A stretch of 64,000 bases of DNA, from positions 55,056,001 through 55,120,000 of the forward strand of contig OZ287756.1 of assembly GCA_965649765.1 (NCBI GenBank), in the 5' to 3' direction. Each line of letters starts with the position of its first letter. Within the stretch, counting starts at the first letter, position 1. The notes beneath the pieces were generated by a model. It was not told where the DNA came from. It worked only from the letters and a program-made list of their open reading frames with translations, and searched no databases. The stretch comes from Bispira polyomma (taxonomy: Eukaryota). A program made the position numbers and the translations under genes. This document shows positions 12,215 through 64,000 of this stretch, one piece after another.

Positions 12215-12339
12215 ATACAGCCAAGTTTATGAAGGCTCTGCTGAATCCAATTGCTTTTAGTATTTTAGTTTTTTATTCTATTGTTTGTTTTTAATATACT
12301 CTACTTTTTATGTGTTTGTGATATATATATTGTGGTAAA

Positions 12340-13593
12340 ATGGGGAGGACGTCTGAAAGGAAATTAAGACACACTAAGAAGACCCCAGCTACTGAAGGCA
12401 GTAAGGCAACAAAGAAAGGTACAGCAAAGAAAAGCAAATTGGGTAAGAATACTCGTATTGATGACAGTATCATAACTAACTCCAGTAGCCTCTTTGATCA
12501 AGCTGAGGCCGACCACGTGTCTCCATCTACCCGATCTCGGCTTACGAACCCTACCGGATCATCACACCAGGCCAATGAAATGCTAACCATACTAAGGCGG
12601 CTTGAGGAATCTAACGCGCTACTCACCCATAGGTTGGATCGAGTAGAAGCTAGAGACTCGACTGCTCAGTCAGCATCTCCTTGCCTAAATCCCACACGTT
12701 CCGCTCACCAGGTCGCGTTGGGTAACGACATCACGGCTCAGCCACACCTCTCAGCTCCAGGTTCCATGACGAATCCTGGTCACTCGTATCCACAGGCACC
12801 GCTGTCGATCAGTACCACGGCTCAGCCACACACGTCAACAGCCAGTTCACTTAACCGGGTCGACTACACCACTGATGCAATCGTTCCCAAAGCAGACATC
12901 CTGAAGACGTTGCCAGACATACAGGCAAGGGTCAACGAGAGGCTAGCCGAGTACAACCTCCAGGCCCAGGCCGTATTTACCCAAGGTAAGGCTGCTCTCA
13001 GACAGAAGTCGGGGAGATTTAATACTACAGACATACCGAACAGCAACCCGAAGACTAGGTGGGCAAACGAGGGGTGGACGGGTACTTCTTCGCGTAAACG
13101 ACCACCTTATGATGACTTGTCGCTTCCTCAGTGGGCATCTGGCCAGTTGGCCAATGCTCTCCAGGTCACGGACCCTCTGGTCTCGAGAGAAATTATACAG
13201 CAGGTCGTTCTATCCCTCAGGGACGCCGCGTCACTACCATGGGAGGTCGTCCGAACGGCCTGGGCGTTAAACATGACCGAGATTGAAGAAGGTAGACTGT
13301 CCTGGGGGGACACAACGCAGTGGGCCCTCAACAGGCTCAGTGCGTCACAGCTAGCTATGGTGAATTCTAAAACCACCAATGCTTCATCTACTCACGTCGG
13401 ATCAACAGCCAAGGTTATTTGCAAACTGTATAACTCCGGAAAGTGTTCGCATAAAGCAGATCACAGCCAGTATAAGCATGTGTGTTGGCACTGTGCTACC
13501 GTGCTTCACAAAGACGTATACCACCCAGAATTTAAGTGTTATAAGTCCAACTCAGCTAAACAGGCAGAATCAGGCTCTTCTTCTACCCACTAG
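12340..13593 (+). CDS. gag: Ngaro Gag-like ORF1
   Basis: 417-aa ORF directly after A1, with a basic N-terminus and a C-terminal Cys/His knuckle CKLYNSGKC...HVCWHC...H...C typical of DIRS/Ngaro ORF1. Confidence 0.88.
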   Translation: MGRTSERKLRHTKKTPATEGSKATKKGTAKKSKLGKNTRIDDSIITNSSSLFDQAEADHVSPSTRSRLTNPTGSSHQANEMLTILRRLEESNALLTHRLDRVEARDSTAQSASPCLNPTRSAHQVALGNDITAQPHLSAPGSMTNPGHSYPQAPLSISTTAQPHTSTASSLNRVDYTTDAIVPKADILKTLPDIQARVNERLAEYNLQAQAVFTQGKAALRQKSGRFNTTDIPNSNPKTRWANEGWTGTSSRKRPPYDDLSLPQWASGQLANALQVTDPLVSREIIQQVVLSLRDAASLPWEVVRTAWALNMTEIEEGRLSWGDTTQWALNRLSASQLAMVNSKTTNASSTHVGSTAKVICKLYNSGKCSHKADHSQYKHVCWHCATVLHKDVYHPEFKCYKSNSAKQAESGSSSTH

Positions 13594-13713
13594 GACATTG
13601 ACCAACTACCAGGACTAGGGCCATCTTGTCATAACAGTGAAAGTAAGAATAAGTTAGAAGTATATGTAAAACAGAATTATGAAGACCAACACATAACTAA
13701 AGCAGATAAGCAT

Positions 13714-16641
13714 ATGGTTTCATTGTTAAATAAGATGGAAAGTAATAATTCGTATATTTTTTCAAACAAACCTGAAAATGTTAATGTGAATGTATTGTCA
13801 CATGAAAGTGAAAATGTAAAAAATGTACACACTGTTAAACCGGAAATGTGTAAACCTAGCTTGTCAATCAGTACTGACAAAAAGAGCATTGATGATAGCC
13901 ATATTGCAGTTAAAAATTATAATGTCATTAGATTGCCTAACAAGTTTGGAAAGATAAAAAATTCATGCACTGCTAAAACGGCAATGTGTGATCCTAGCTT
14001 AACAGTTAGTATCGACAAGAAGGTTAATAATAGTGAACCTATTGGGGTCAAGAAATGGAATGTTCAGCAATATATCAGGGCCAGTGTACTGGACTCGAGT
14101 ACCAGTACTAGAATGTACAGAGATGACAGTTGTGGTCCATTCACCAAATTTGGGGGCTTTTCTAAAAATAAAGGTGATATTAAGATAAATGGTCTAGATA
14201 ATTCACACAGCGAAGTCCCTGTATTTTGGGGAAACAGAAATATTGGTGAACATTTAGAAAGAGAGAATAAAAGAAATTTTACAGTTAATGCTGATTTATG
14301 TAATGCCAGCAGTGTTAATGCCAGGTATGGTACCCCAAATGAGACAAAAGTAAAAGTTACCATCTCTACTACTAATTGGTTGTTTTGCATGCCTCACATT
14401 ACACAAGGAATGCCTGTGGTTTTTGTGCAGTCTGAGCTGCCACATGTTTCTGGTTTTTACACCTCATGGGATGAGGATTTTGGGACAAATTTCTACAGAT
14501 GTAAGAACCCACCAACTGGGGTAATGTCAGTGACCAGCATAGTCACAACTCAAATAGCTTTGGCTAATTTTAGGGATGATTTTCAAAACAGCAACAAGGT
14601 TGTAACAGTTACTGATGATGACAAATGTAAAGCTAAGGATGCTTGGCATGATTTTCAAAAAGAAATGTATTGCAAAAACAATTTCAAAAAAGGTTATACA
14701 GAATATGTAACAAATATCATTGACGAAATGTTGTTAGACATAAATGTAAATACAACATGTGTTGTCAGTAATGACAGACCAATGGAGGTTCAAACCTGCC
14801 ATAAAGGTAAAGTAGCGTCGTGCGATCTCTTCTTCCAAACTTTTGGACATTTCTCACAAACTACCACAAGTGCCACCATAGTGGATAAGGATATTAATTT
14901 CCCCAACAAAACTAAGGGTTTCTTGGCAAGCTCAGAAACCAAGTTTAGTTTTATAGGACCTGACAGGGCCCCCATACACATTACTTCAATTAAGGAAATG
15001 TCTGAAATAGCACAAACCATTAGGGATACGGGATGTCCCAATTATAAGGGAGCAAGGATCCCCCTGGTATCAGGTCTTAACACCAAAGCATGGGAGGAAG
15101 TCCTTTCAAATTACCCAGATGAACTTTTACTACAATATATCAAGTTTGGTTTTCCCCTCTCACTTACTTGTCCAAAGGATTTAAAGGTCAAGGATACCAC
15201 CAATCACCACTCTGCACTTGAATTTAAGGACCACATAAGGCAATATTTAGAAAAAGAGAAACAGTGTGGGGCCATGTTAGGACCTAGTTTACACATTAAG
15301 GATGAATTATTTCACTGTTCTCCACTGCTCACCAGACCTAAGGACAATTCCAAAAGGCGTGTAATTTTAAACTTGTCTCACCCCAGTGGGGAATCACTTA
15401 ATGACAATGTCAATAGGAAACAATTCGATGGAGTGGACTTCACCTTAAAATTTCCCACAATAGACGATATAGTAGAACAGATTCGTAAAACACACACTCC
15501 ACGTATCTTTAAACTGGACGTCGCGCGCGCTTTTAGAAATTTGAGGGTGGACCCAGTCGATGCCATGAAATTAGGAATCAAATTTGACGACCATAAGTAC
15601 GTTGATCCGGCGGTTGCGTTCGGCTGGGTCCACGGCTCGGCTGCTTTTCAGCGTTGCTCGGATGTTATAGCACACACCATGGAGAAGCACAACCATAAGA
15701 TCTTCTGTTATATCGACGATTATGTAGGCGTTTCTCCAGACTCGGAAGCAGAAGAAGCTTTTAACCAATTATATGAACTGGTTACCAAACTTGGTTTTCC
15801 GTTAAACCCAGAAAAAATTTCAAAACCAAGTTCAAAAGTCACCTGTCTTGGCATAGATATCGACATTCAGGCAGGCACTATAAGTATTACTCCCGAAAAA
15901 ATACAGGAAACATATAACCTCTGTTTAGAAATAGTTAACAAAGTTTGGATATCTAGAACTAAATTTCAATCAATATTGGGAAAATTGCTTTACATCCATA
16001 AATGTGTAAAGCCTGCTCGAATGTTTATAAACAGACTTCTTATGGCGTTTCGGAATAACAGTCAAGCTAAACGATTTAAAATTTCGCATGACATGAAGGC
16101 TGACTTATTATGGTTCGTACAATTTCTACCACGCTATAATGGTATTACGTTCATCGATCCGGTAATTGCTAAGCATAAGGATGAGGTTTTTATTGATGCA
16201 TGCCTCACTGGCCTAGGGGCCATCTACACCAATGAGGTTTTCGCTACCCCATTATACAACATCTATAATAGGGCTTTATCTATCGTGCATATCGAAATGC
16301 TTAACATTCTATTAGCTTTAAGGGTCTGGGGTGAGCAGTGGAGTCATAGACGTATAATCATGAATTGTGACAACATGTCCGTTGTCCTGGTAGTTAGGTC
16401 CAATAAGACAAAAGACGATTTTCTTGCTTTATGTTTAAGGAATATCTGGCTAATCTCGGCTGTACATGATATTACAATCGAGATTCAGCACATTAAAGGT
16501 AAAGACAATGTAATTGCTGACCTCCTTTCAAGACTTTTTTCTGAGCAACCCCCCCATAAGGGACAGTTGGAAATATTAAGGGATTCCTGTAAGTGGCACA
16601 CCATTCCACTCCAGTACTTTAACCTAGACTTAAATATATGA
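13714..16641 (+). CDS. pol: Ngaro Pol: reverse transcriptase + RNase H
   Basis: RT motifs RRVILNLS, KLDVARAFR, FGWVHGS and YIDD. RNase H motifs FIDAC, HIEMLN, CDNMSVV and HIKGKDNVIADLLSR. The frame is open back to 13594. Confidence 0.96.
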   Translation: MVSLLNKMESNNSYIFSNKPENVNVNVLSHESENVKNVHTVKPEMCKPSLSISTDKKSIDDSHIAVKNYNVIRLPNKFGKIKNSCTAKTAMCDPSLTVSIDKKVNNSEPIGVKKWNVQQYIRASVLDSSTSTRMYRDDSCGPFTKFGGFSKNKGDIKINGLDNSHSEVPVFWGNRNIGEHLERENKRNFTVNADLCNASSVNARYGTPNETKVKVTISTTNWLFCMPHITQGMPVVFVQSELPHVSGFYTSWDEDFGTNFYRCKNPPTGVMSVTSIVTTQIALANFRDDFQNSNKVVTVTDDDKCKAKDAWHDFQKEMYCKNNFKKGYTEYVTNIIDEMLLDINVNTTCVVSNDRPMEVQTCHKGKVASCDLFFQTFGHFSQTTTSATIVDKDINFPNKTKGFLASSETKFSFIGPDRAPIHITSIKEMSEIAQTIRDTGCPNYKGARIPLVSGLNTKAWEEVLSNYPDELLLQYIKFGFPLSLTCPKDLKVKDTTNHHSALEFKDHIRQYLEKEKQCGAMLGPSLHIKDELFHCSPLLTRPKDNSKRRVILNLSHPSGESLNDNVNRKQFDGVDFTLKFPTIDDIVEQIRKTHTPRIFKLDVARAFRNLRVDPVDAMKLGIKFDDHKYVDPAVAFGWVHGSAAFQRCSDVIAHTMEKHNHKIFCYIDDYVGVSPDSEAEEAFNQLYELVTKLGFPLNPEKISKPSSKVTCLGIDIDIQAGTISITPEKIQETYNLCLEIVNKVWISRTKFQSILGKLLYIHKCVKPARMFINRLLMAFRNNSQAKRFKISHDMKADLLWFVQFLPRYNGITFIDPVIAKHKDEVFIDACLTGLGAIYTNEVFATPLYNIYNRALSIVHIEMLNILLALRVWGEQWSHRRIIMNCDNMSVVLVVRSNKTKDDFLALCLRNIWLISAVHDITIEIQHIKGKDNVIADLLSRLFSEQPPHKGQLEILRDSCKWHTIPLQYFNLDLNI

Positions 16642-17639
16642 TTTCAGGATCAAACCACATCACACAAAGATTCACAGACTCAGCATGGCAGAGGATTGAC
16701 TGTGCTTTGCGTCCAAAGACTACACAGACTTACAATACCCAGTTTAGAACCTTCATCTCATTTACTTGCTATGCTGGAATAGAAGAAATTACCACACACT
16801 CATTGATTGCATTTCTAGAATACTTGGTACAAACAGGGGCGTCACCCAACATGGTTAATAACCATCTTGCAGCCATTAAACATATGGCCAAGAAGTTGTA
16901 CTGGGATACAAAAATTTTTGGAAACAATACAGTGTCTATGTTTACTAGAAGCTTGACACATACATCACCATTTAGACCTTCACCTAAAGGAATTTTCCAC
17001 ATTGAACACTTTTCAACACATTGATTACTGATCTCCAAAGCTTGTGATATTTTAAGAGACCCACCTCTATATAGGGCCATTTTCATGCTAGCTTTCTTTG
17101 GATTCTTGAGAATATCCAATATAGTCCCTCATTCCAGATCCAAATTTGATCCAACTCGTCACTTTCTAAGGAAAGATATAATCTTTGGCCACCCAGGTGC
17201 ACACTTGATCTTGAAGTGGGCAAAGAATTTACAAATTAGATCACAGTTTCACATTATACAGATACCCTTACTGGACAATGTTTTACTATGTCCAGTCAAG
17301 GCCATACAGACATTATTGAAATCTAGACCTCTGTCACCTGATGCCCCACTCTTCGTCAGTAGTACTTACCCACACTATCCAATTGTAGAAACACATGTGC
17401 GTTCTGCACTAGCTTCAATACTTACACATGTGGGAATTCCCACCAAATCACATAGTTTCCACACATTTAGAAGATCAGGGGCAACATATGCCTTTAATAA
17501 TAACGTGTCACTTCAAAACATCATGGCGCACGGCCTCTGGAGGTCATCTGCAGTCTGGTCATATTTGCATCAGAATTCTCAAGCAACTTCTGCTGTCCCT
17601 CTCACTTTCGCCTCCTCTCTACCTAAACTTCCTTCCTAG
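16638..17639 (+). pseudogene. Ngaro tyrosine recombinase with one in-frame TGA (17022-17024)
   Basis: ORFs 16638-17024 and 17085-17639 share a frame. Catalytic motifs GFLRISN (R), HTFRRSGA (HxxR), HGLWRS and WSYL (Y) are present. Confidence 0.93.
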
Positions 17640-17646
17640 TTTGGCT

Positions 17647-17836
17647 TGGGTGATTTTAAAATTGCCTTGTATTTTAATAATTTATACCTATTTTACACCT
17701 ACCTGTATATAGATTTACTAACATGTACAGAATTTAAATAAATTCCTCAAACCATAGTTTCACTGTCTTCTGCTATACTTACCAGACTATCTTTCCACTA
17801 CAACTTACCTTCTTTCCATTATACCAAGTAGAACTG
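17647..17836 (+). repeat. Ngaro split direct repeat B1 (190 bp)
   Basis: Matches 18712-18901 with one mismatch seen. Confidence 0.95.
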
Positions 17837-18035
17837 TGCATAGCACGACCCAATAGGGGTCTGCTACTTCAGTTCAACCAAAGGAAAATGTATTACTACT
17901 TTAAGCCCTAGGGGCATGATTCATCCAACCGTGAACTGGCCAGCCAATTAGGGGTCTTCCCTCCCAAATTCTGCATTCCTGTCCTAATATCTTCCATTTT
18001 GGAAAAGGATTCAGCAGTATACACACGTACATTTT
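17837..18035 (+). repeat. Ngaro split direct repeat A2 (199 bp)
   Basis: Copy of A1, directly abutting B1. Confidence 0.95.
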
Positions 18036-18711
18036 CCACCCACCTCCCCTTAACCACACCATAAGTTAATGTTCATTGTTCATTTCTTAGCTATGGCCAC
18101 TTTTGGTACTAAGCACATACTATGTTAAGAAGATCTCTGGTTGCGGACCCAAAAGGGCCCTGCTGAAAATCTTTGTAAGATAGGAAATCACTTAAATTTG
18201 GTTGGATTTGTGGGAGTTTTTGAACTCGGAACTGTGTGGTGTTAGGTCCTTCCTCATAACCTACCCTCTGGTGTGGGCTACCAGGGGGGCAATGCTCTGT
18301 GAGGTAGGACGTCTCACTGCTAAGCGAGTCGGTGCTGTAAGTTCCGGGTTCCCAAAAACTCCAATTAAGGCTGCTAGCGCAGGCATAATACGGCTTATAA
18401 GTCCGGATTAAATAGGAAATTTACTAGTTAACGATTAAATATTGGTATGATTTAAAATGTTGAATGTAATGTCATTGGGCATAATTGTATTGAATAGTAT
18501 TGGTATGATGTAATGTCATTTGGTATAATTGTATTGAATAGTGTTGGATCGACGTTGGCCTTAGGGGCTGATTGTTATAAAGGTGTACTGTTGTATGCTA
18601 GGCAAATGCTTAGTCTTCAGACGTTGGTTTTCCCAGCTTGCTGCTTAATGCTTGTGAGGTTTTATCCTCTGTATTATTTACTACCTTGCTTTTGCTTGTG
18701 TTGTCATGTAA

Positions 18712-18901
18712 TGGGTGATTTTAAAATTACCTTGTATTTTAATAATTTATACCTATTTTACACCTACCTGTATATAGATTTACTAACATGTACAGAATTT
18801 AAATAAATTCCTCAAACCATAGTTTCACTGTCTTCTGCTATACTTACCAGACTATCTTTCCACTACAACTTACCTTCTTTCCATTATACCAAGTAGAACT
18901 G
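18712..18901 (+). repeat. Ngaro split direct repeat B2 (190 bp)
   Basis: Copy of B1; it defines the 3' end of the element. Confidence 0.95.
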
Positions 18902-41936: not shown

Positions 41937-44556
41937 TAGTTCATAATACTATAAGTCATTCAGAATTTTCACCTGATACATGCATTTATTTTTTTAATGT
42001 ATAATTAGCATATAATTTATATAATATTTATATTCAGTCATGATATATACATACCCTTAGGCTTTTAAAGATAAAGACACCTACTTTATTAAAAACTGTG
42101 TTATAGGTAGAAGTCTCCATCCATAAATTGAATAATAAGTTCCCCACCAGGAAAAGTCCCTATTAGCTTAAATGAGGGTGAGGAAAAGTTCACATTAATT
42201 TTTTATTTTTTTATAGAGAACAATAATTAACAAATTTTTTTATAACATAAGAATGTAGAAAACATATTAGTCGGGCTAATCAAATTATTTGCAGGTTAAT
42301 CTTTTCCAAAATTACTGAAGGATCAGTCTGAAATTTTGCAAATGTATACCTTACCACATAGATAATAAAAATGGTTTATGGCATTTTGTTTAAATTTTTA
42401 ATTTGGATATTATTTTATTTATTTGTTTAAATTTAAGAAACATGAATAACTCTAATTTATTATTGCATTTTGACACTTTGAATGTATTATGAGCATATAG
42501 AAAAACAGGATCAGAAAAGCTAATGCACTGGTCAAATTTGACCTATGACCTTGAATTCAAGTAGTTTGTGTCTTGTCTTTAAGTGGTTACTTAAAACAAT
42601 GCCACCAAACTTTCTGGTATATTTTTTTAATGATCAGCAGCCTTTCTTGTAAGGGTTTTAAAGAAACGTATCTGTCAAGGTCCCTTTTCTGGCCCTAAAA
42701 AGGGCAATTTTTATGTTTTTGCTTTATATCTTATTAACAAGAGTTTTAAAACTTGGAATGAAATCAATGTATTGTGAGCCTATACGAAACCAGAGATTTG
42801 ACCTACGACCTTAGGATCAAGGTTAAGTTGCTTTCATGAAGGTCATCAATCAGAAGAAAACTGCTATGCCCGTTCAGGCATTCACATCTTGTTGTTCGTT
42901 TGCTTGAACAATTTTCAATTTCTGACTGCTACAGTGGTCACTACATTCTTGTTTAAATGGTGGTTCCACTATGCCGATTTCGTAGTAAACCTTGCCAATT
43001 TTACCATTTTGTCAGTTATTTTGCCATAGCAGTCCCGAGTTGATTATTTAATTAAAAGTACGATCGTCATAGACGTGATCACTTTATATAGTGATAGTAG
43101 ATTTTGCCTTAGCCTAGAGATATGAGACCGTTGAGCGGTCACTGAATGCTTGGTATTGTTTCAATGCCTGAGCAATATACAGGGTTTCGAAATCCACGTG
43201 TCGCACAACGTTTTAAAGCAATAAAATACCTTATATCGGCTTTATTTTATAACATTTTCTTCGATTGCAGATTCTGCCATTTTGTAAATAAAAAAAAACA
43301 AATATCGCACTCTGCGCAGCTTCCAAAATATTAAACTACGGTCGCTGTTTGTCTGCTACATTTTTATTGGTTCAAAATTGGGAAGTTGTTCTGTGACAAC
43401 CAATCAGCGCCTAGCTTTGTTCTAGCAATTTGCAAGCGCCACCTAGTGAGTGTGTGATTTGTTACCACATAAAACCAACATTGTATAATAAAAGCATTGT
43501 ATAATCTATTCAAACCCTAGCAACCAAAAAAGGGAAGATTTTTGGTTTTTGTATTACACATCAGATGCATATATCAGACAGCATATATGGTGTGGTCTGC
43601 TTTCAATATACTTTTTTAGGAATATAAGCCATTTTAATTTGATGGCTAAATATTGGCTAAATTGCTGATTTTTGTCCCCCATTTAAAATTATAATGCCTC
43701 ACTTTTTCAGTGACAGTGGAGGAGTGCCCCCACATTTGGAAATTCCTAAATGGACACTGTGAAGTGACATTGGCATATTTATTATAAATCTTATTTTGTT
43801 GAAGTATGAATTAATTTTAAAACCACGATTGATTTTTTAGTGTTGGTAAAAGCATGAAATGAGTTGAAAATATTGACCATATATTATTTTGCCACCAGAA
43901 ATTTATTATTTAAAAAAAAATGTGATCGGTAAAATACATAATACTTGAATTTGTCGTCTGATGTCATAATAGCTTGATTGTATTAAACAAGTACTCAGTG
44001 ACTGACAATCTACATGTGGCCCCATGGGCCACTCTTATCTTGTTTATGTTTTTGAGCCATTTATTTTATGAATGTAATATGAGTGTATTGGAAACAAAGA
44101 TTAGACAATGAAATGTACTGGCCATAGTTGGCCTATGTCCTCAGGTTTAAAGTCAAACATGGGTTACAAAGCTCAAATTTCAATATTTGTGTCTTGTCTT
44201 GACTGACATTTGATATGTCATTCTTGAAAGCAATAAGCATACAAGTGTTATTATGTAAACATTTTCTTTGACTGTCTACACTACTTATTACACTGTATAA
44301 TTTAAACTTGTCCACTGCTTTTGTATTGTTAGTTGCTGCGGTGATTATTATTGCTAAAGCTGTTGATGGATTAAAATTAGGTCTTTATACAATATACACT
44401 TACACAAGTCATTGGATAATGCAGAAAATGTACCTGAATTGACACTAATGAAGTAATTCTATAGCAGTTATTTTCGCCCCTAAAAAAATAGATTATTGTT
44501 ACGTTAGTCATTTGTGAATAACTATGGTGTATTGTTTTAAATGCATTTTTATAGAT

Positions 44557-44845
44557 TGTGATTATTTAAATCTAAGTTTATTCACTGAAAAATTCTGGAT
44601 GCATAATTTTAACTGGCTTTAAATATAACTAATTGTTTTATTACAGATATCCAAGATTACATACAGAGTTTTCTAAATTTGAATAAAATTGTGTATATGT
44701 TTTTAAAAGGTTATATGTACCTAACAAAGAATGTTTAAATTTATACTCTGTGGTCTATGAATGAGTATCAACCAAATAGTTGACACAGATATATTATTAC
44801 TCTGAGCTACTCTATAATCTAGAATGTAGTAAACATAATTGTCTG
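44557..44845 (+). other. Exon-less paralog of the ankyrin array unit
   Basis: Upstream and downstream intron sequence are joined at GTACC-TAA-CAAAG. The 277 bp equivalent to 52985-53261 (acceptor, exon, donor) are absent. Confidence 0.93.
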
Positions 44846-44991
44846 ATATACTTTTAGATGAACAATTATTAAATTTAAGGTTGTCATTAAATGGTTGGAC
44901 ATTAAATTTTGACTTATAACATGTACCAAAATGCATTTTGTTCAAGTTGTTATAATGATTGATATGACCTTGATATAGATTGGTAAACTTG

Positions 44992-52000: not shown

Positions 52001-52990
52001 CACACATCAAATTATATCAAACAAATCAACTTATAGCTGTGGCTGCCTATTTAATTTCATTCATTAATTGGTTGACATGATTACCACCACTCAAGCCAGT
52101 TAAGCTACTTAATAACACATCCAGTTAGACAAAAAAATCAACATACAGCTGTGGCTTCCTATTTAATTTCAATTATGAAAGGATGAACATGGTTACTATG
52201 ACTAAATTCAGTTAAGCTATTTTATATGTAGTCCTTATAAACAAATCAAGTAATACATGGTTCCCATTGTATCAATGTATCATCAATTAAATCGATGGAA
52301 AGGCACAGTTAAAGGATAGGCTTACATCAATTTAGGCAGTTTTTAATAGAGATTTTCAATCAATCAAATGTAAATTCATCATCAAAACAAGCAATATATT
52401 TTAAGGAATAAGGTTATGAGCTTTCAATAGTGGATTTTAAACCTTAGTTATTATGAAAAAAAGCATAGTGAGAGGATAAGCTTACTTATTTGGGACAATT
52501 TAAATAAAGTATACATTATAAATGTCGGAAAACAGGCAATGACTAGAACATTTAATAATGAACTTTAAACCTGTCATTTCATTAAAAAAAATAACATAAA
52601 ATCATCATTGTGTGAATTAATTATTATTAAAACATTTACGATCTCTAGTTTTCAATTTTTATCCAATCTCAAGTTTGGCCAGTTTTCCTCAGACAATTCT
52701 GTGACAAGTGTGGATAAAACACATAGTTCATTTAATCCTTCAATACAAATAATATTAGGTGATATTTTGTAAGCATTTTCTCTGACTGTCTGCACTACTT
52801 ATACAATATCACAAACTGTGATTATTTAAATCTAAGTTTATTCACCGCAAAATTCTGTATGCATAATTTCATCTGGTTTTCAATATAAGTAATTGTTTTA
52901 TTACAGATATCCAAGATTACATACAGAGTTTTCTAAATTTGAATAAAATTGTGTATATGTTTTTAAAAGGTTATATGTACCTAATTACAG

Positions 52991-53257
52991 ATCATGCTTA
53001 TCATTAGTTCTTCACAGAGCTGTCAGCTGTGCACTGAAGTCCACAGTGGAGACGTTACTCTCAATTCCTGGAGTGGATGTTAATGTTAAAGATCAGGAGG
53101 GTAGAACACCCCTGATGGTGATTGGTATGAGCGTGGTGGATTGGGTTGACATGGGAGACCTTGATGACCTTGATCACAATTTATGTGGTATAATTAGACT
53201 GTTACTTGAACACCAGGCTGACATGAATGTAAAAGACAATACAGGAACCGGTGTCAG
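52991..53257 (+). CDS. Ankyrin array exon 1 (267 nt, loop type A: SVVDWVDMGDLDDLDHNL)
   Basis: TTACAG|A acceptor, CAG|GTAACA donor, phase 2-2, open frame SCLSLVLHRAVS...GRTPL...QADMNVKDNTG. Confidence 0.88.
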
Positions 53258-53806
53258 GTAACAAAGAATGTTTTACTTTATACTCTGTGGTTTATCAATG
53301 AGTATCAACCAAATAGTTGACACAGATATATTATGCCAGCTCTGAGCTACTTTATACTCTAGAATGTAGTAAACATAATTGTCTGTTCGAGCAGCTATAT
53401 TACTTATACCTTATACTTAACATATAATATTGTCTAATGTCCCTAACATAATGCAATTTAAAAATGAAGTGAATTGTTTGAAACACAAAATAATGTAAAC
53501 CTAGCCGGAATGTAGCACTTGTCTCAAAAAAAATCTTAAATTTGTTACGTACGTATGATAATTAGTTAGATACAGACATTAAAATATCACATAACAGGTA
53601 AATGTTAATGCTATTAATACAATATCACAAACTGTGATTATTTAAATCTAAGTTTATTCACCGCAAAATTCTGTATGCATAATTTCATCTGGTTTTCAAT
53701 ATAAGTAATTGTTTTATTACAGATATCCAAGATTACATACAGAGTTTTCTAAATTTGAATAAAATTGTGTATATGTTTTTAAAAGGTTATATGTACCTAA
53801 TTACAG

Positions 53807-53903
53807 ATCATGCTTATCATTAGTTCTTCACAGAGCTGTCAGCTGTGCACTGAAGTCCACAGTGGAGACGTTACTCTCAATTCCTGGAGTGGATGTTAAC
53901 GTT
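53807..53903 (+). pseudogene. Partial array exon (5' third, no donor)
   Basis: 190-bp duplication that runs into intron sequence and a stop (VLLQIFKITYRVF*). Confidence 0.85.
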
Positions 53904-53996
53904 TTATTACAGATATTCAAGATTACATACAGAGTTTTCTAAATTTGAATAAAATTGTGTATATGTTTTTAAAAGGTTATATGTACCTAATTACAG

Positions 53997-54093
53997 ATCA
54001 TGCTTATCATTAGTTCTTCACAGAGCTGTCAGCTGTGCACTGAAGTCCACAGTGGAGACGTTACTCTCAATTCCTGGAGTGGATGTTAACGTT
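53997..54093 (+). pseudogene. Partial array exon (5' third, no donor)
   Basis: Second 190-bp duplication with the same breakpoint. Confidence 0.85.
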
Positions 54094-54186
54094 TTATTAC
54101 AGATATTCAAGATTACATACAGAGTTTTCTAAATTTGAATAAAATTGTGTATATGTTTTTAAAAGGTTATATGTACCTAATTACAG

Positions 54187-54480
54187 ATCATGCTTATCAT
54201 TAGTTCTTCACAGAGCTGTCAGCTGTGCACTGAAGTCCACAGTGGAGACGTTACTCTCAATTGCTGGAGTGGATGTTAACGTTAAAGATCAGGAGGGTAG
54301 AACACCCCTGATGGTGATTGGTATGAGTGTGGAGGATTGGATTCACAGGGGAGACCTTGATGACCTTGATGACCTTGATGACTTTAATGACCTTGATCAC
54401 AATTTATGTGGTATAATTAGACTGTTACTTGAACACCAGGCTGACATGAATGTAAAAGACAATACAGGAACCGGTGTCAG
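54187..54480 (+). CDS. Ankyrin array exon 2 (294 nt, loop type B: SVEDWIHRGDLDDLDDLDDFNDLDHNL)
   Basis: Same splice sites, open frame. Confidence 0.85.
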
Positions 54481-55030
54481 GTAACAAAGAATGTTTTAAT
54501 TTATACTCTGTGGTTTATCAATGAGTATCAACCAAATAGTTGACACAGATATATTATGCCAGCTCTGAGCTACTTTATACTCTAGAATGTAGTAAACATA
54601 ATTGTCTGTTCGAGCAGCTATATTACTTATACCTTATACTTAACATATAATATTGTCTAATGTCCCTAACATAATGCAATTTAAAAATGAAGTGAATTGT
54701 TTGAAACACAAAATAATGTAAACCTAGCCGGAATGTAGCACTTGTCTCAAAAAAAAATCTTAAATTTGTTACGTACGTATGATAATTAGTTAGATACAGA
54801 CATTAAAATATCACATAACAGGTAAATGTTAATGCTATTAATACAATATCACAAACTGTGATTATTTAAATCTAAGTTTATTCACCGCAAAATTCTTTAT
54901 GCATAATTTCATCTGGTTTTCAATATAAGTAATTGTTTTATTACAGATATCCAAGATTACATACAGAGTTTTCTAAATTTGAATAAAATTGTGTATATGT
55001 TTTTAAAAGGTTATATGTACCTAATTACAG

Positions 55031-55127
55031 ATCATGCTTATCATTAGTTCTTCACAGAGCTGTCAGCTGTGCACCTAAGTTCACAGTGGAGACGTTACTC
55101 TCAATTACTGGAGTGGATGTTAACGTT
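55031..55127 (+). pseudogene. Partial array exon (5' third, no donor)
   Basis: Third 190-bp duplication, carrying the private changes CCT AAG TTC. Confidence 0.85.
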
Positions 55128-55220
55128 TTATTACAGATATTCAAGATTACATACAGAGTTTTCTAAATTTGAATAAAATTGTGTATATGTTTTTAAAAGG
55201 TTATATGTACCTAATTACAG

Positions 55221-55505
55221 ATCATGCTTATCATTAGTTCTTCACAGAGCTGTCAGCTGTGCACTGAAGTCCACAGTGGAGACGTTACTCTCAATTGCTG
55301 GAGTGGATGTTAACGTTAAAGATCAGGAGGGTAGAACACCCCTGATGGTGATTGGTATGAGTGTGGAGGATTGGATTCACAGGGGAGACCTTGATGACCT
55401 TGATGTCTTTGATAACCTTGATCACAATTTATGTGGTATAATTAGACTGTTACTTGAACACCAGGCTGACATGAATGTAAAACACAATACAGGAACCGGT
55501 GTCAG
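55221..55505 (+). CDS. Ankyrin array exon 3 (285 nt, loop type B: SVEDWIHRGDLDDLDVFDNLDHNL)
   Basis: Same splice sites, open frame. Confidence 0.85.
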
Positions 55506-56054
55506 GTAACAAAGAATGTTTTAATTTATACTCTGTGGTTTATCAATGAGTATCAACCAAATAGTTGACACAGATATATTATGCCAGCTCTGAGCTACTT
55601 TATACTCTAGAATGTAGTAAACATAATTGTCTGTTCGAGCAGCTATATTACTTATACCTTATACTTAACATATAATATTGTCTAATGTCCCTAACATAAT
55701 GCAATTTAAAAATGAAGTGAATTGTTTGAAACACAAAATAATGTAAACCTAGCCGGAATATAGCACTTGTCTCAAAAAAAATCTTAAATTTGTTACGTAC
55801 GTATGATAATTAGTTAGATACAGACATTAAAATATCACATAACAGGTAAATGTTAATGCTATTAATACAATATCACAAACTGTGATTATTTAAATCTAAG
55901 TTTATTCACCGAAAAATTCTGTATGCATAATTTCATCTGGTTTTGAATATAAGTAATTGTTTTATTACAGATATCCAAGATTACATACAGAGTTTTCTAA
56001 ATTTGAATAAAATTGTGTATATGTTTTTAAAAGGTTATATGTACCTAATTACAG

Positions 56055-56312
56055 ATCATGCTTATCATTAGTTCTTCACAGAGCTGTCAGCTGTGCACTG
56101 AAGTCCACAGTGGAGACGTTACTCTCAATTACTGGAGTGGATGTTAACGTTAAAGATCAGAAGGGTAGAACACCGCTGATGGTGATTGGTATGAGTGTGA
56201 AGGATTGGCCTGACTGGAGAAGCTTTGATGACAGTTTGTGTGGTACAATTAGACTGTTACTTGAACACCAGGCTGACATGAATGTAAAAGACAATACAGG
56301 AACCGGTGTCAG
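56055..56312 (+). CDS. Ankyrin array exon 4 (258 nt, loop type C: SVKDWPDWRSFDDSL)
   Basis: Same splice sites, open frame. Confidence 0.88.
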
Positions 56313-56861
56313 GTAACAAAGAATGTTTTAATTTATACTCTGTGGTTTATCAATGAGTATCAACCAAATAGTTGACACAGATATATTATGCCAGCTCTGA
56401 GCTACTTTATACTCTAGAATGTAGTAAACATAATTGTCTGTTCGAGCAGCTATATTACTTATACCTTATACTTAACATATAATATTGTCTAATGTCCCTA
56501 ACATAATGCAATTTAAAAATGAAGTGAATTGTTTGAAACACAAAATAATGTAAACCTAGCCGGAATGTAGCACTTGTCTCAAAAAAAATCTTAAATTTGT
56601 TACGTACGTATGATAATTAGTTAGATACAGACATTAAAATATCACATAACAGGTAAATGTTAATGCTATTAATACAATATCACAAACTGTGATTATTTAA
56701 ATCTAAGTTTATTCACCGCAAAATTCTGTATGCATAATTTCATCTGGTTTTCAATATAAGTAATTGTTTTATTACAGATATCCAAGATTACATACAGAGT
56801 TTTCTAAATTTGAATAAAATTGTGTATATGCTTTTAAAAGGTTATATGTACCTAATTACAG

Positions 56862-57119
56862 ATCATGCTTATCATTAGTTCTTCACAGAGCTGTCAGCTC
56901 TGCACTGAAGTCCACAGTGGAGACGTTACTCTCAATTACTGGAGTGGATGTTAACGTTAAAGATCAGAAGGGTAGAACACCGCTGATGGTGATTGGTATG
57001 GGTGAGAAGGTTTGGCCTTACTGGAGAAGCTTTGATGACAGTTTGTGTGGTACAATTAGACTGTTACTTGAACACCAGGCTGACATGAATGTAAAAGACA
57101 ATACAGGAACCGGTGTCAG
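56862..57119 (+). CDS. Ankyrin array exon 5 (258 nt, loop type C: GEKVWPYWRSFDDSL)
   Basis: Same splice sites, open frame. Confidence 0.88.
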
Positions 57120-57668
57120 GTAACAAAGAATGTTTTAATTTATACTCTGTGGTTTATCAATGAGTATCAACCAAATAGTTGACACAGATATATTATGCCA
57201 GCTCTGAGCTACTTTATACTCTAGAATGTAGTAAACATAATTGTCTGTTCGAGCAGCTATATTACTTATACCTTATACTTAACATATAATATTGTCTAAT
57301 GTCCCTAACATAATGCAATTTAAAAATGAAGTGAATTGTTTGAAACACAAAATAATGTAAACCTAGCCGGAATGTAGCACTTGTCTCAAAAAAAATCTTA
57401 AATTTTTTACGTACGTATGATAATTAGTTAGATACAGACATTAAAATATCACATAACAGGTAAATGTTAATGCTATTAATACAATATCACAAACTGTGAT
57501 TATTTAAATCTAAGTTTATTCACCGAAAAATTCTGTATGCATAATTTCATCTGGTTTTGAATATAAGTAATTGTTTTATTACAGATATCCAAGATTACAT
57601 ACAGAGTTTTCTAAATTTGAATAAAATTGTGTATATGTTTTTAAAAGGTTATATGTACCTAATTACAG

Positions 57669-57935
57669 ATCATGCTTATCATTAGTTCTTCACAGAGCTG
57701 TCAGCTGTGCACTGAAGTCCACAGTGGAGACGTTACTCTCAATTACTGGAGTGGATGTTAATGTTAAAGATCAGGAGGGTAGAACACCCCTGATGGTGAT
57801 TGGTATGAGCGTGGTGGATTGGGTTGACATGGGAGACCTTGATGACCTTGATCACAATTTATGTGGTATAATTAGACTGTTACTTGAACACCAGGCTGAC
57901 ATGAATGTAAAACACAATACAGGAACCGGTGTCAG
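57669..57935 (+). CDS. Ankyrin array exon 6 (267 nt, loop type A)
   Basis: Same splice sites, open frame. Confidence 0.88.
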
Positions 57936-58484
57936 GTAACAAAGAATGTTTTACTTTATACTCTGTGGTTTATCAATGAGTATCAACCAAATAGTTGACA
58001 CAGATATATTATGCCAGCTCTGAGCTACTTTATACTCTAGAATGTAGTAAACATAATTGTCTGTTCGAGCAGCTATATTACTTATACCTTATACTTAACA
58101 TATAATATTGTCTAATGTCCCTAACATAATGCAATTTAAAAATGAAGTGAATTGTTTGAAACACAAAATAATGTAAACCTAGCCGGAATGTAGCACTTGT
58201 CTCAAAAAAAATCTTAAATTTGTTACGTACGTATGATAATTAGTTAGATACAGACATTAAAATATCACATAACAGGTAAATGTTAATGCTATTAATACAA
58301 TATCACAAACTGTGATTATTTAAATCTAAGTTTATTCACCGCAAAATTCTGTATGCATAATTTCATCTGGTTTTCAATATAAGTAATTGTTTTATTACAG
58401 ATATCCAAGATTACATACAGAGTTTTCTAAATTTGAATAAAATTGTGTATATGCTTTTAAAAGGTTATATGTACCTAATTACAG

Positions 58485-58742
58485 ATCATGCTTATCATTA
58501 GTTCTTCACAGAGCTGTCAGCTCTGCACTGAAGTCCACAGTGGAGACGTTACTCTCAATTACTGGAGTGGATGTTAACGTTAAAGATCAGAAGGGTAGAA
58601 CACCGCTGATGGTGATTGGTATGAGTGTGAAGGATTGGCCTTACTGGAGAAGCTTTGATGACAGTTTGTGTGGTACAATTAGACTGTTACTTGAACACCA
58701 GGCTGACATGAATGTAAAAGACAATACAGGAACCGGTGTCAG
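58485..58742 (+). CDS. Ankyrin array exon 7 (258 nt, loop type C: SVKDWPYWRSFDDSL)
   Basis: Same splice sites, open frame. Confidence 0.88.
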
Positions 58743-59291
58743 GTAACAAAGAATGTTTTAATTTATACTCTGTGGTTTATCAATGAGTATCAACCAAATA
58801 GTTGACACAGATATATTATGCCAGCTCTGAGCTACTTTATACTCTAGAATGTAGTAAACATAATTGTCTGTTCGAGCAGCTATATTACTTATACCTTATA
58901 CTTAACATATAATATTGTCTAATGTCCCTAACATAATGCAATTTAAAAATGAAGTGAATTGTTTGAAACACAAAATAATGTAAACCTAGCCGGAATGTAG
59001 CACTTGTCTCAAAAAAAATCTTAAATTTGTTACGTACGTATGATAATTAGTTAGATACAGACATTAAAATATCACATAACAGGTAAATGTTAATGCTATT
59101 AATACAATATCACAAACTGTGATTATTTAAATCTAAGTTTATTCACCGAAAAATTCTGTATGCATAATTTCATCTGGTTTTGAATATAAGTAATTGTTTT
59201 ATTACAGATATCCAAGATTACATACAGAGTTTTCTAAATTTGAATAAAATTGTGTATATGTTTTTAAAAGGTTATATGTACCTAATTACAG

Positions 59292-59558
59292 ATCATGCTT
59301 ATCATTAGTTCTTCACAGAGCTGTCAGCTGTGCACTGAAGTCCACAGTGGAGACGTTACTCTCAATTACTGGAGTGGATGTTAATGTTAAAGATCAGGAG
59401 GGTAGAACACCCCTGATGGTGATTGGTATGAGCGTGGTGGATTGGGTTGACATGGGAGACCTTGATGACCTTGATCACAATTTATGTGGTATAATTAGAC
59501 TGTTACTTGAACACCAGGCTGACATGAATGTAAAACACAATACAGGAACCGGTGTCAG
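59292..59558 (+). CDS. Ankyrin array exon 8 (267 nt, loop type A)
   Basis: Same splice sites, open frame; appears identical to exon 6. Confidence 0.88.
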
Positions 59559-59796
59559 GTAACAAAGAATGTTTTAATTTATACTCTGTGGTTTATCAAT
59601 GAGTATCAACCAAATAGTTGACACAGATATATTATGCCAGCTCTGAGCTACTTTATACTCTAGAATGTAGTAAACATAATTGTCTGTTCGAGCAGCTATA
59701 TTACTTATACCTTATAGTTAACATATAATATTGTCTAATGTCCCTAACATAATGCAATTTAAAAATGAAGTGAATTGTTTGAAACACAAAATAATG

Positions 59797-60490
59797 GCTA
59801 AACAGCTTAATGGATTTATATCCCAAGAAGGTATTGCGAATGTTACCCAATCTGCATACCGGAGATCCCACTCCACAGAGACCGCTCTACTCAAGATTCT
59901 AAATGATATAGCTATGTCTGTTGACATGGGAAAGGCAGTGCCCCTTACATTACTGGACCTCTCTGCAGATTTTGACATCAACAATCACTCCATTTTATAT
60001 GACTGTTTAACAGACTGGTTTGGAATTGATGGGACTGTATTGCTTTGGATCAAATCCTACCTCCTAGACTGTAAACAAAAAATCAAAATTGGTAGCAGTT
60101 TTTTCCTGAGGTCTTTTTGCTGCCCTTCGGTGTTCTCCAAGGTTCTGTCCTAGGTCCTCTGCTTTTTACCCTGTACACTACCCCCCTCAGTCAAGTCATT
60201 TCAAAGTTTAATTTTACCCATCACCTGTATGCTGATGACACACATATATACCTAGCACTGGACTCCAGGAACTTTGACTCAAGTATTGCCGAGCTCACTG
60301 ACTAAAATTAGTCCAGGAGTGGATGGATTGTGCAAAATTAAAGCTCAACCCAGATAAAACGGATTTCATTATTATAGGTAACAAACCCACCACAGAGTCA
60401 CTTACAGCAAAATTTGCTATTTCATTCCTCCAAAACAATATCACTCCGTCAGCAGAGGTAAAAAACCTGGGTGTCATCTTTGACTTGGAC
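59797..60490 (+). pseudogene. Internal RT fragment of an L2-like LINE, frameshifted
   Basis: [40 protein letters not shown] and LKLNPDKT are spread across three frames. Confidence 0.93.
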
Positions 60491-60761
60491 AGAAATGTAA
60501 CAATACTAAAGTTATAACTGTTAATTTGTATGCAGTTGCTTAAAATACAACTCCAAATATGTGTTTTGACATTTTTCCACTTTGGGACTGTGTCTTCTCA
60601 AATAATATTTTTTTAACTGCATTACAATGTTTTACTTTTAGCACTTATAAAATGTATGAATGTGCTGATATAGGTCAAAATATAACACAAAACAATCAGA
60701 AAAAGCTCCAAAAAATTAAAAATTCACAGTAAATTACATCATACAAACAACAGGCACAGAG

Positions 60762-61409
60762 TAGTCATGTTGCTCTCATCATGTAGATGTATGTGTTTTA
60801 GACATGTTGCTGTATATCATGTGTCTATGTGTGTTTTGTACATGTTGCACTCACTATGTATCTATATGTGTTGGGTACATGTGGCTGTAAGTAATGTACC
60901 TGAGTGTTTGGACTTGTTGCTCTTGCCATGTAGCTATATGTGTTTTAGACATGTTGCTCTCGCCATGTACTGATACGTGCTTCGAACATGTTGCTCTCAA
61001 CATGCACCTGTTTGTGTTTTGGACATGTTAATCTTGCCATGTACGTATATGTGTTTTAGGCATGTTGCTCTCGCCATGTACCAATATCTGTTATGGACAT
61101 GTTGCTTTCGCCATGTACCAATATCTATTTTGGACATGTTGCTCTCGCCATGTACCAATATCTGTTATGGACATGTTGCTCTCGCCATGTACCAATATCT
61201 GTTATGGACATGTTGCTCTCGCCATGTACCAATATCTGTTATGGACATGTTGCTCTCGCCATGTACCAATATCTGTTATGGACATGTTGCTCTCGCCATG
61301 TACCAATATCTGTTTTGGACATGTTGCTCTCGCCATGTACCAATATCTGTTTTGAACATGTTGCTCTCACCATGTACCAATATCTGTTTTGAACATGTTG
61401 CTCTCACCA
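60762..61409 (-). repeat. 37-bp minisatellite array, inverted relative to 45976-46782
   Basis: Period 37 (for example 61141 and 61178), with recently homogenised units at 61060-61409; interrupted by the L2 tail. Confidence 0.95.
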
Positions 61410-61410
61410 T

Positions 61411-64000
61411 ATTATTTATTATTATTATTATGGATTTTTAACGCGCTTTATTGATGCTAGGCATCTTCTAAAGCGCAACAGCAGAATCATTAGTCCAATC
61501 ATTAAGTCCGTGGAAATTGCAAAGTCGTAAGGAAGGAAGTGGGAGCGTGCACGAGGAAAGCTAAGGTGGGTAGGCAAGATTAAAAAGATAGGTCTTAAGC
61601 TTTTTCCTAAAACCAATAAGCGTATCAACTGATCTGAGGTCGACTGGGAGACTGTTCCATAACCGTGGAGCTGCAGTGGAGAATACTCTGAAACCCGCCT
61701 TTCTGATTGGTCTGACCAAAGTGACAGAGAGTCTGTTTCCTCTCTTACGGTTACTGAAGGAAAGAAGGGAGGCAAGGTAGGGTGGCTGTTGAGTGACTAC
61801 AGCCTTAAAAGTGGTAACGTGAATCTTAAACAAAATTCGAGATTCAATGGGCAACCAGTGTAATTTTTTGAGGTAAGGAGTGACATCTGTGCGACAACCC
61901 AGGCGAAAAATGACCCTACATAGGTAGTTTTGGATGGACTGGAGCTTTTTAATGTTTGACTTGTTTGCTTCGTACAAGAGAGAATTGCAGTAGTCTAGGC
62001 GGCTACTCACAAGGGCATTTGCCACAGTTATCGCTGTGTCCATGGACAAGTGGTTTCTGATTCTTTTGATGTCACGTATGTGGTAATAGCAGGAGCGACA
62101 GATGTTGGCAAAATGCGTAGTGAACGAAAAAGCTGAATCAAAAGTGACACCCAGGTTTTTAGCATTTTCGGAAGGTAGTATGTCTTTTCCCAGCAGGGAG
62201 ATGGGAAACAAAGATTTTAGGAGTTCACTGTTTTTCTTGTTTCCTATGAGGATGAATTCTGTTTTGTCCGGGTTAAGCTTTAGTTTGGAGTAGTTCATCC
62301 ACGCCTGGACATCAGACAGACAGTCTGCAAGTAGGTCTATGTTAGTATCTGCATTTTGTGGATTGAGGGAGAGATAGACTTGAGTGTCGTCTGCGTACAT
62401 GTGGTGCTTTATATTGTGTTTATTGATGACAGTGCTGAGAGGATGTGTATAAAGGGTGAAAAGTAGAGGACCAAGGACGGATCCCTGGGGTACTCCATAT
62501 GGAAGTTTTATGGAAGATGATAGGTGATCATCTAGTTTAATTCTTTGTGCTCTAAGAGTAAGGTAGGATCTGATCCATTTAAGGACACTGCCATTTATAC
62601 CGAACCACTGCTTGAGAGTGTCACAGAGCAGGACATGATCAATAGTGTCGAAAGCAGCTGAGAGATCTAGAAGGGTGAGGGCCACTGTGTCATTGCGGTC
62701 CAGTGCAAGATTGATATCATTGCTAATTGAAAAAAGGGCACTTTCTGTAGAGTGAAATTTTCTATAAGCAGACTGATGGCGATTTTGAATGTTTTGTCTA
62801 TTAAGGTGGTCAGAAATTTGTTTAGCTACAGCTTTCTCGATGACTTTTGAGACGAAGCTGAGGTTTGACACCGGTCTGTAGTTTTTGAGCTGGTTTTTAT
62901 CAAGCCCTTGTTTTTTAATCAAGGGAGTTACGTTTGCCGTCTTGAAACAGGTGGGAAAAACACCATCCCGAAGAGAAAAATTTAATATATTTGTTATGGG
63001 TGTGACAAGAATGTCAAGACATTGACTCGGTATAATTGCTGGGATGGGATCTAAGTCACAAGAGTTAATGGTAGAGGATTTGATGAGTTTCAGAACTTCA
63101 GGCTCTGACAGTGTACTAAAATGAAACAGGTTACAAACCTTATATCCTGGGGCTGGAGGGTTGAAGTGATGTATCGTTGGGAAGGCGTCACGAATTTTGC
63201 TGATTTTTTCAATAAAAAATTTTCCAAATTTTTCTGCTAAAAAAGTAAGGCAGTGGTTTATGGGGAGAACTTTCTCTGATGTTCGATGTAGAATTTTGTT
63301 TATGGAGGCCCATAACCTTTTGGGATTATCCTGATTTTCAGTGATGATGGAGTCGTAGTGTTGCTTTTTGGCATCAGTTATTAACCTGTTGTAATTATTT
63401 GTGGCGATACGGTAACGGCTTCTGTCTAAGGACGATTTTGTGCGTCGCCATTGACGCTCAAGTTGGCGTTTGCGTCTTTTGGCCTCTGTAATGGCGGCAT
63501 TGGTCCATTCATGGGTGTTAGTTGGGGGAAGGGTTTTTGATACCCATGGCGCATGTTTATCGAGGACAGTAGAAAGGCAGTGATTGTATTGTAGGCTAAG
63601 GCTTTCAGCATTTATGCATGGATTTTTGGTGAGATTAGTTTCCAGGATATCGTCTCTAAATTTGTTTATATTGATTTTTCTGATGTTTCTGTATTTTATG
63701 ACACGTGGTCTATGTGAGGCAGGTATTGGTAAATTTAAATAGGCGAAGGTTGCTAGGTGATCTGAAATCACATCAGTTACCCATGATTCTCTGATGAGAT
63801 TTGAATTTGGTCTTGCGATTACCAGATCGAGTATGTGACTGTGGATGTGGGTTGAAGTAGAAATAAACTGTGAGAACCCAAAAGTGTCGAGGAGGGTGTT
63901 GAAATCTTTTGTCGTAGTATTTTCTATGTCAAGCTTGATGTTGAAATCACCAAGGATGATAGCTTCAAATGGGAGAAGGTTGAGGGTCTCTAGGAATTCG
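61411..64000 (-). mobile_element. L2/Crack-clade LINE, 3' portion (continues beyond the window)
   Basis: Uninterrupted ORF2, a 3' UTR of about 130 nt, and a (TAA)n tail at 61411-61430. Confidence 0.95.
61561..63999 (-). CDS. LINE ORF2 (APE endonuclease C-terminal part + reverse transcriptase)
   Basis: The frame is open to the window edge. Endonuclease motifs IILGDFN, ILDLV and ISDH; RT motifs NYRPVSNL, LDLSAAFD, GVPQGSVLGP and YADD; L2-type end FRKKLKTYLF. Confidence 0.95.
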   Translation of the reverse strand, partial: EFLETLNLLPFEAIILGDFNIKLDIENTTTKDFNTLLDTFGFSQFISTSTHIHSHILDLVIARPNSNLIRESWVTDVISDHLATFAYLNLPIPASHRPRVIKYRNIRKININKFRDDILETNLTKNPCINAESLSLQYNHCLSTVLDKHAPWVSKTLPPTNTHEWTNAAITEAKRRKRQLERQWRRTKSSLDRSRYRIATNNYNRLITDAKKQHYDSIITENQDNPKRLWASINKILHRTSEKVLPINHCLTFLAEKFGKFFIEKISKIRDAFPTIHHFNPPAPGYKVCNLFHFSTLSEPEVLKLIKSSTINSCDLDPIPAIIPSQCLDILVTPITNILNFSLRDGVFPTCFKTANVTPLIKKQGLDKNQLKNYRPVSNLSFVSKVIEKAVAKQISDHLNRQNIQNRHQSAYRKFHSTESALFSISNDINLALDRNDTVALTLLDLSAAFDTIDHVLLCDTLKQWFGINGSVLKWIRSYLTLRAQRIKLDDHLSSSIKLPYGVPQGSVLGPLLFTLYTHPLSTVINKHNIKHHMYADDTQVYLSLNPQNADTNIDLLADCLSDVQAWMNYSKLKLNPDKTEFILIGNKKNSELLKSLFPISLLGKDILPSENAKNLGVTFDSAFSFTTHFANICRSCYYHIRDIKRIRNHLSMDTAITVANALVSSRLDYCNSLLYEANKSNIKKLQSIQNYLCRVIFRLGCRTDVTPYLKKLHWLPIESRILFKIHVTTFKAVVTQQPPYLASLLSFSNRKRGNRLSVTLVRPIRKAGFRVFSTAAPRLWNSLPVDLRSVDTLIGFRKKLKTYLFNLAYPP

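Follow-up and report, generated by a model that had tools for sequence, protein, structure and literature searches.

The shuffling of repeat exons, combined with diversification of a binding surface, is already known from the ROCO and NB-ARC genes of brown algae, from fungal NLRs and from oyster bindin. We analysed a 64,000-nucleotide (nt) window of the Bispira polyomma genome (C9:55056001-55120000, within a 75-contig assembly of 1.035 Gb), in which eight ankyrin-repeat exons, here called C1 to C8, stand in a tandem array within a larger predicted gene. No description of an animal ankyrin gene with shuffled repeat exons and a diversified surface was found in the literature searched, which was incomplete.

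In brown algae, the ROCO (LRR) and NB-ARC-TPR genes (PMC3341825, PMC11378527) resemble this locus in carrying each repeat unit on a single symmetric exon (phase 2 in ROCO), in gaining and losing exons, in keeping inactive exon copies within introns, and in changing fast at the presumed binding surface. Alternative splicing and positive selection have been shown for these algal genes. The units differ, being LRRs of 72 nt in ROCO genes and two-ankyrin modules on exons of 225-294 nt here. The algal genes form a family, whereas we found two genes, and the ROC-COR and NB-ARC parts were not found here. Fungal NLRs with highly conserved WD, ANK or TPR repeats (PMC4986451) are alike in their near-identical ankyrin units, their concerted evolution and the surface position of their variable sites. 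In contrast to the present locus, they possess a NACHT/NB-ARC or HET-type effector, and their variation lies on hairpin and inner-helix positions; here the units are separated by introns, and the variation lies in a loop inserted between helices. An earlier, sequence-only reading of this DNA had called intron conservation a signature of the fungal repeats, but the word "intron" is absent from PMC4986451. A precedent does exist in the SSSGP genes of the Hessian fly, where homogenisation has left introns more conserved than the coding part (PMC2955719), although these are whole small secreted genes and not exons of one gene.

Among animal genes, oyster bindin (PMC5712786) is similar in that tandem domain exons, encoding F-lectin repeats, are diversified by recombination and binding-site change; bindin, however, is a secreted acrosomal lectin, whereas an intracellular ankyrin protein is predicted here, for which hydropathy showed neither a signal peptide nor a transmembrane segment. 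Arthropod Dscam (PMC3236188) shares tandemly duplicated exons, one faster-evolving epitope and an adaptive status that is hard to prove, but its arrays are of old origin, lack homogenisation and are spliced in a mutually exclusive manner. By analogy, the locus appears to work like the shuffled repeat-exon receptors of brown algae and the fungal NLRs, with one repeat unit per symmetric exon, gain and loss of units, and recombination or conversion among them. It is a member of none of the compared systems (ROCO/NB-ARC, fungal NLR, bindin, Dscam, SSSGP), because the nucleotide-binding core was not found: neither the ROC GTPase with COR of ROCO proteins nor the NACHT/NB-ARC with death, TIR or HET effector of NLR/STAND proteins was detected, and conversion or crossover among the C exons sets them apart from Dscam.

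The C array and its variable loop

The array and its parts, all on the plus strand, are as follows.

52802..59795: tandem array of eight C units, basic period 807-816 nt
52907..52947: candidate terminal mini-exon of 12 codons (acceptor, stop, AATAAA), found in every C unit
52991..53257: exon C1, loop class I
53711..54090: a pair of 190-nt sub-duplications within array intron 1, each with a decoy half-exon (53807 and 53997)
54187..54480: exon C2, loop class II, with the longest expansion of a 9-nt micro-repeat (54353-54397)
54935..55124: third 190-nt sub-duplication, with a decoy half-exon at 55031
55221..55505: exon C3, a variant of loop class II
56055..56312: exon C4, loop class III (paralog-like)
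56862..57119: exon C5, a variant of loop class III
57669..57935: exon C6, loop class I
58485..58742: exon C7, a variant of loop class III; outside the loop, unit 7 equals unit 5
59292..59558: exon C8, loop class I, same sequence as exon C6

The eight complete C exons span 52991-59558, and every one is a multiple of three in length (258-294 nt), free of stops, of phase 2-2 and bordered by AG and GT. Each matched Pfam Ank/Ank_2 above the cut-off and is thus an ankyrin-repeat exon, in line with the earlier description of eight intact exons of about two repeats each. The last C unit is cut by a fragment of a long interspersed nuclear element (LINE). Introns 3-7 of the array measure 549 nt, whereas introns 1 and 2 measure 929 and 740 nt, being lengthened by three sub-duplications of 190 nt, in which truncated exon starts are present. 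Each sub-duplication holds an acceptor and ~97 nt of exon without a donor, and reading through the decoys of intron 1 gives 44 codons, a stop and AATAAA. An in-frame acceptor 27 nt downstream was also considered as the primary C acceptor and was rejected; the upstream one, which yields the 549-nt introns, restores the opening helix common to all modules of the gene and is therefore the right one.

An alignment of the eight units gave 684 columns free of gaps. The 30 variable ones are clustered: the loop has 16 among its 42 columns, compared with 8 of 216 in the framework and 6 of 426 in the intron, and a scan statistic for this clustering was never reached in 10000 permutations. The near-identity of the introns had been noticed before; the length of 549 nt given then applies to introns 3-7. 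Likewise, the framework is nearly invariant, as had been claimed, but the three loop classes proved to hide six distinct loop sequences; and while the loop is the most variable part, the divergence is not confined to it, covering ~135 nt of the exon, synonymous sites included. Classes I and II are related to each other and, according to the tree, derived, whereas class III is the type also present in the paralog described below.

Recombination or conversion among the C units is evident from their patterns of variation. By the four-gamete test, 41 of 231 informative site pairs are incompatible, which makes the units mosaics, and the intron types do not follow the loop classes. The pairs 5-6 and 7-8 have the appearance of a duplication of two units at once. 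Three nonsynonymous changes, all in the loop, are all that separates unit 5 from unit 7, and between units 4 and 5 the only differences are nonsynonymous changes in the exon.

The near-identity of the units, together with the decoy half-exons, degenerate module copies and many transposable-element insertions, might suggest an assembly artefact or a decaying, unexpressed sequence. We regard this as very improbable. Haplotype merging was rejected as the source of the array, since two haplotypes of one exon cannot yield six distinct loop sequences or mosaic units that include a two-unit duplication; moreover, the window is free of N, the array occupies 7 kb in a 75-contig assembly, the reading frame stays open over 32 exons, and the paralog is intact.

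To place the loop in the fold, we used the AlphaFold model of the paralog's C module (mean pLDDT, the predicted local distance difference test, 89.5). It has helices at residues 2-12, 16-23, 40-43 and 57-70 and forms two ankyrin repeats, with a template modelling (TM) score of ~0.75 to designed ankyrin repeat proteins (DARPins) and consensus ankyrins. By the helix positions of this model, the variable insert separates helix 1 from helix 2 in the second repeat. The confidence reaches its minimum of 65 in the insert, and every module of the gene has an insert of its own at this place. The end of helix 1 adjoins the usual ankyrin binding face and is distinct from the hairpin finger. The modules had earlier been thought to form an ankyrin solenoid. 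However, the junctions between modules exceed a regular ankyrin junction by ~7 residues, so that a continuous solenoid was not established and a chain of two-repeat beads is equally plausible.

The predicted gene, its paralog and its tail

Further exons were found with a profile built from the modules, and the chain was joined and its frames checked by script. The predicted gene comprises 32 exons, all with GT-AG introns, and ~2850 open codons, running over ~130 kb from the ATG at 8169 to C9:55196572, some 76 kb past the window end. Its exons follow the order A, B, eight C, E, four F, ten older modules (an intron divides one of them), a closing ankyrin exon and the tail exons. There are thus 25 two-ankyrin modules, nearly all of one symmetric exon each, and every one-exon internal module is of phase 2-2. 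The two modules upstream of the array are these.

8146..8467, plus strand: exon A, first coding exon, ATG at 8169, module 1 (two ankyrin repeats, long insert), ending in phase 2
27752..28003, plus strand: exon B, module 2, phase 2-2, 252 nt

The four F exons are likewise arranged in tandem, as a second array with units of 5-6 kb (L013:845 to L014:8761), in which F1 and F2 differ at 9 of 225 exon bases and 5 of 400 flanking bases, with the changes outside the loop. Two degenerate E/F module copies flank exon E (L012:2242-2592 and L012:3202-3450), one without clear splice sites and one with stops; they recall the inactive exons within introns of algal ROCO genes. At a similar place, the paralog contains an E/F copy that is broken. 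By its sequence, the C array is the newest expansion within this larger predicted gene.

A search of the genome for paralogous genes, which gives a lower bound, found only one other gene of this kind, on the same strand ~290 kb upstream (C9:54775500-54943079; past C9:54870000 it is described by match coordinates and identities). No donor cassettes emerged elsewhere in the genome, the search returning only these exons and the paralog. The paralog has the same module order, with a single C exon carrying a class III loop, three F exons (assigned by position) and one extra module, whose exon (L029:2018-2230) is intact, of phase 2-2, and without trace in the first gene by tblastn or blastn. Its modules and tail show 73-84% identity, with no stops in the module-exon matches; exon A is 76% identical, with a 1-nt indel ahead of the ATG.

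Intron flanks differ by ~11% between the two genes and by 0-1% among the introns of the eight C units, which implies that the gene duplication long preceded the amplification of C, or the homogenisation of the C units. A further C unit copy lies upstream of the array.

44549..44850, plus strand: exon-less C unit copy, exon and both splice sites gone at a 3-nt TAA microhomology, junction near 44722

This deletion recurs in the paralog region, and the site lies inside a segment that is 92-98% identical between both genes. This intronic segment (28576-47964) is thus much closer to its counterpart than the rest of the two genes; it stands 5' of exon C here and 3' of exon C in the paralog, which indicates a recent transfer or rearrangement between them. 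From the eight copies against one and the exon-less site, module C has been gained and lost several times; the second array of four copies and the decoy half-exons likewise point to gain and loss as a recurrent process. The idea that modules can be added or dropped in frame thus found agreement in the C copy numbers, in the second array (four units against three), in the exon-less site and in the incompatible site pairs.

Beyond the ankyrin part, the predicted tail consists of two low-complexity linker exons, a Cys/His motif with a coiled coil, a BEN-like domain over two exons, and a low-complexity end with basic clusters. On the first half-domain exon, BEN (PF10523) scored 12.7-13.7 bits (E 0.075-0.15), below the 23.2-bit cut-off; the second half-exon gave no match. 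Atlas neighbours of the tail were BEN/DUF4806 at 0.86-0.88, and the single-sequence fold of the domain was poor (pLDDT 53). These results suggest, weakly, that the tail carries a BEN-like domain. BEN chromatin factors (PMC8887127, PMC4281564) are similar in having a coiled coil followed by a BEN-like helical motif, with basic clusters near the C terminus, although here the match is below the cut-off and split by an intron. A fusion of ankyrin repeats with BEN was not found in the literature searched.

A downstream effector such as ROC-COR, NACHT, death or TIR had been envisaged. None was found in the gene's range, in plus-strand open stretches of at least 70 aa read by eye or in Pfam searches of the tail exons, though very small exons could escape; nSTAND3 likewise had no match in this range. 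All non-transposon open stretches of this kind, from the start of the gene to its stop, were ankyrin modules, tail exons or intron noise. Since no such effector or core exon was found and the tail is BEN-like instead, the parallel with NLR and ROCO proteins is limited to the sensor part.

Probable selection on the loop and the predicted product of the gene

We give a probability of about 0.55 to the reading that the array belongs to a functional, lineage-specific gene, whose product would be an intracellular, possibly nuclear, multivalent binding protein of ~2850 aa with diversified loops. The stop-free chain of 32 exons, all GT-AG, together with a paralog without stops in module exons or tail, was counted in favour of a functional gene. 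The loop itself provides further evidence. In its 12 gap-free codons, the third position takes only 1 of 17 minimum changes (p ~0.01, binomial test and simulation), and several codons have changed more than once. Between the paralogs, over modules A, B and C, the proportion of nonsynonymous differences (pN) was 0.16 in the loop, compared with 0.07 in the framework (p = 0.001) and with 0.08 at all synonymous sites (p = 0.02). The faster change of the loop relative to the framework, noted earlier, therefore extends to the non-arrayed modules A and B. Between classes I/II and class III, loop pN reached ~0.3 and exceeded the paralog intron divergence of 0.11 (p 0.0003-0.005). On balance, we consider diversifying selection on the loop probable.

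Several results weigh against this picture. The count of synonymous loop changes is not below the neutral expectation (p 0.06-0.26). Between classes, synonymous divergence in the ~135-nt tract is 10-19%, and against it loop pN shows no significant excess (p 0.1-0.35); between paralogs, the comparison of loop pN with intron divergence gives p = 0.07. Framework pN equals the proportion of synonymous differences (pS) between paralogs, which indicates weak constraint throughout. In the tail, the BEN match is under the Pfam cut-off with a poor fold, the linker is poorly conserved in the paralog, and the join to the ankyrin part requires a 42-nt intron (84 nt in an alternative) and a non-consensus GTCAGA donor. 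Because of this join, the tail could be a separate gene, which we hold to be unlikely. No homologue outside this genome was found: exon C4 retrieved generic ankyrins only, protein searches within a length limit gave none for the module profile, the last exon or the closing ankyrin exon, and metagenomes and PDB sequences held none.

With synonymous sites in the tract differing by 10-19%, much of the contrast between exon and intron reflects an old divergent island amid converted flanks, and such an island may be kept either by selection or by mismatch-limited conversion. The second possibility leads to a mechanical, near-neutral account in which a functional gene tolerates change. Exon C would have existed as two divergent copies or alleles of old standing, later placed in tandem and amplified. 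Conversion would have made the flanks uniform, with mismatches hindering it in the tract, and a weakly constrained surface loop would drift and slip at its 9-nt repeat. The clustering of synonymous differences in the same tract (4 of 21 sites), the likeness of class III to the paralog, the framework dN/dS of ~1 between paralogs and the general instability of the region (the segment common to both paralogs, the 190-nt duplications and the load of transposable elements) would all fit such turnover. It is harder to reconcile with the third-position deficit and the repeated hits in the same codons, with recent unit pairs that differ by nonsynonymous loop changes only, and with the intactness of all eight C exons; we judge it to be rather unlikely.

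The eight exons might instead serve as a Dscam-like or bindin-like generator of isoforms, with skipping, mutually exclusive use or an early end at the mini terminal exon giving cell-specific loop combinations. Symmetric exons with identical, rather weak acceptors and a second in-frame acceptor 27 nt downstream would permit this, and each unit offers a candidate mini-exon with AATAAA in a 95-nt block that is identical at the exon-less site (p = 0.002). Next to the paralog's intact C exon, however, the mini-exon is degraded; symmetric 3n exons require no exclusivity; and Dscam arrays are old and without conversion (PMC3236188), unlike the C array. This account appears quite improbable to us.

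For a gene with diversified loops, the following mechanism can be proposed. Since nearly every module is one phase 2-2 exon, gain, loss or skipping leaves the frame intact, and unequal crossover can insert or take out entire binding modules. As the sequence shows, module C underwent repeated duplication and deletion, unequal crossover and conversion producing eight copies with homogenised introns and most of the framework. The ~135-nt tract around the insert between helix 1 and helix 2 escaped homogenisation, and amino-acid changes and 9-nt slippage built up there, while conversion, by keeping frame and introns uniform, may keep crossover frequent. Selection would probably favour several loop specificities side by side, displayed together on one intracellular protein. 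Concerted evolution of repeats is rare in animals and enriched in host-parasite contexts (PMC5100051), and we suppose that the loops bind a changing ligand in genetic conflict. Among the candidate ligands, pathogen or transposon proteins come first, though still as a tentative choice, and a conflict with pathogens or transposons is accordingly the likeliest driver; germline or chromatin partners seem unlikely. The tail might, on weak indications, couple loop binding to DNA or chromatin, in place of a GTPase or NLR switch. At its boldest, this becomes a variable protein-sensing chromatin factor, polymorphic in the population and directed, for example, against transposon or viral proteins. Its ankyrin modules, with antibody-like loops, would multiply and change places, perhaps with combinatorial splicing as well, and would be joined to a BEN DNA-binding domain; we would not expect this full version to hold.

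Surroundings and significance of the locus

Two further features of the window lie in introns of the gene.

11998..18901, plus strand: DIRS-type retrotransposon in intron 1 of the gene (gag-like open reading frame, reverse transcriptase/RNase H, tyrosine recombinase)
59796..64000, no strand assigned: within the 17-kb intron that follows the array, LINE fragments and a minisatellite of 37 nt

The DIRS element is a passenger. It looks complete, with open frames, and must have moved recently, as the paralog region holds a copy of 99% identity at a different position (C9 ~54809400-54816300). The 37-nt minisatellites (46032-46778 and 60766-61410) adjoin LINE ends and have opposite orientation on either side of the array, and inverted LINE arms of 600 nt lie at 48189 and 61414. 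Upstream of exon A, a perfect 185-nt inverted repeat (5055-5803, 379 nt between the arms) is probably a young miniature inverted-repeat transposable element (MITE) or DNA transposon. Rfam gave no match in positions 1-52700 of the window. Elsewhere, clusters occur at C9 ~53.87-54.60 Mb and C10 ~46.37-46.62 Mb; they consist of single open frames, 1180-1370 aa long, that matched ankyrin, and nSTAND3 had no match in them.

A single locus thus presents all stages of the process, with ancient modules, a younger array of four copies, a very young array of eight and a paralog that serves as single-copy control. It makes testable whether the loop between ankyrin helices acts as a specificity element, and how invertebrates without adaptive immunity vary their intracellular recognition.

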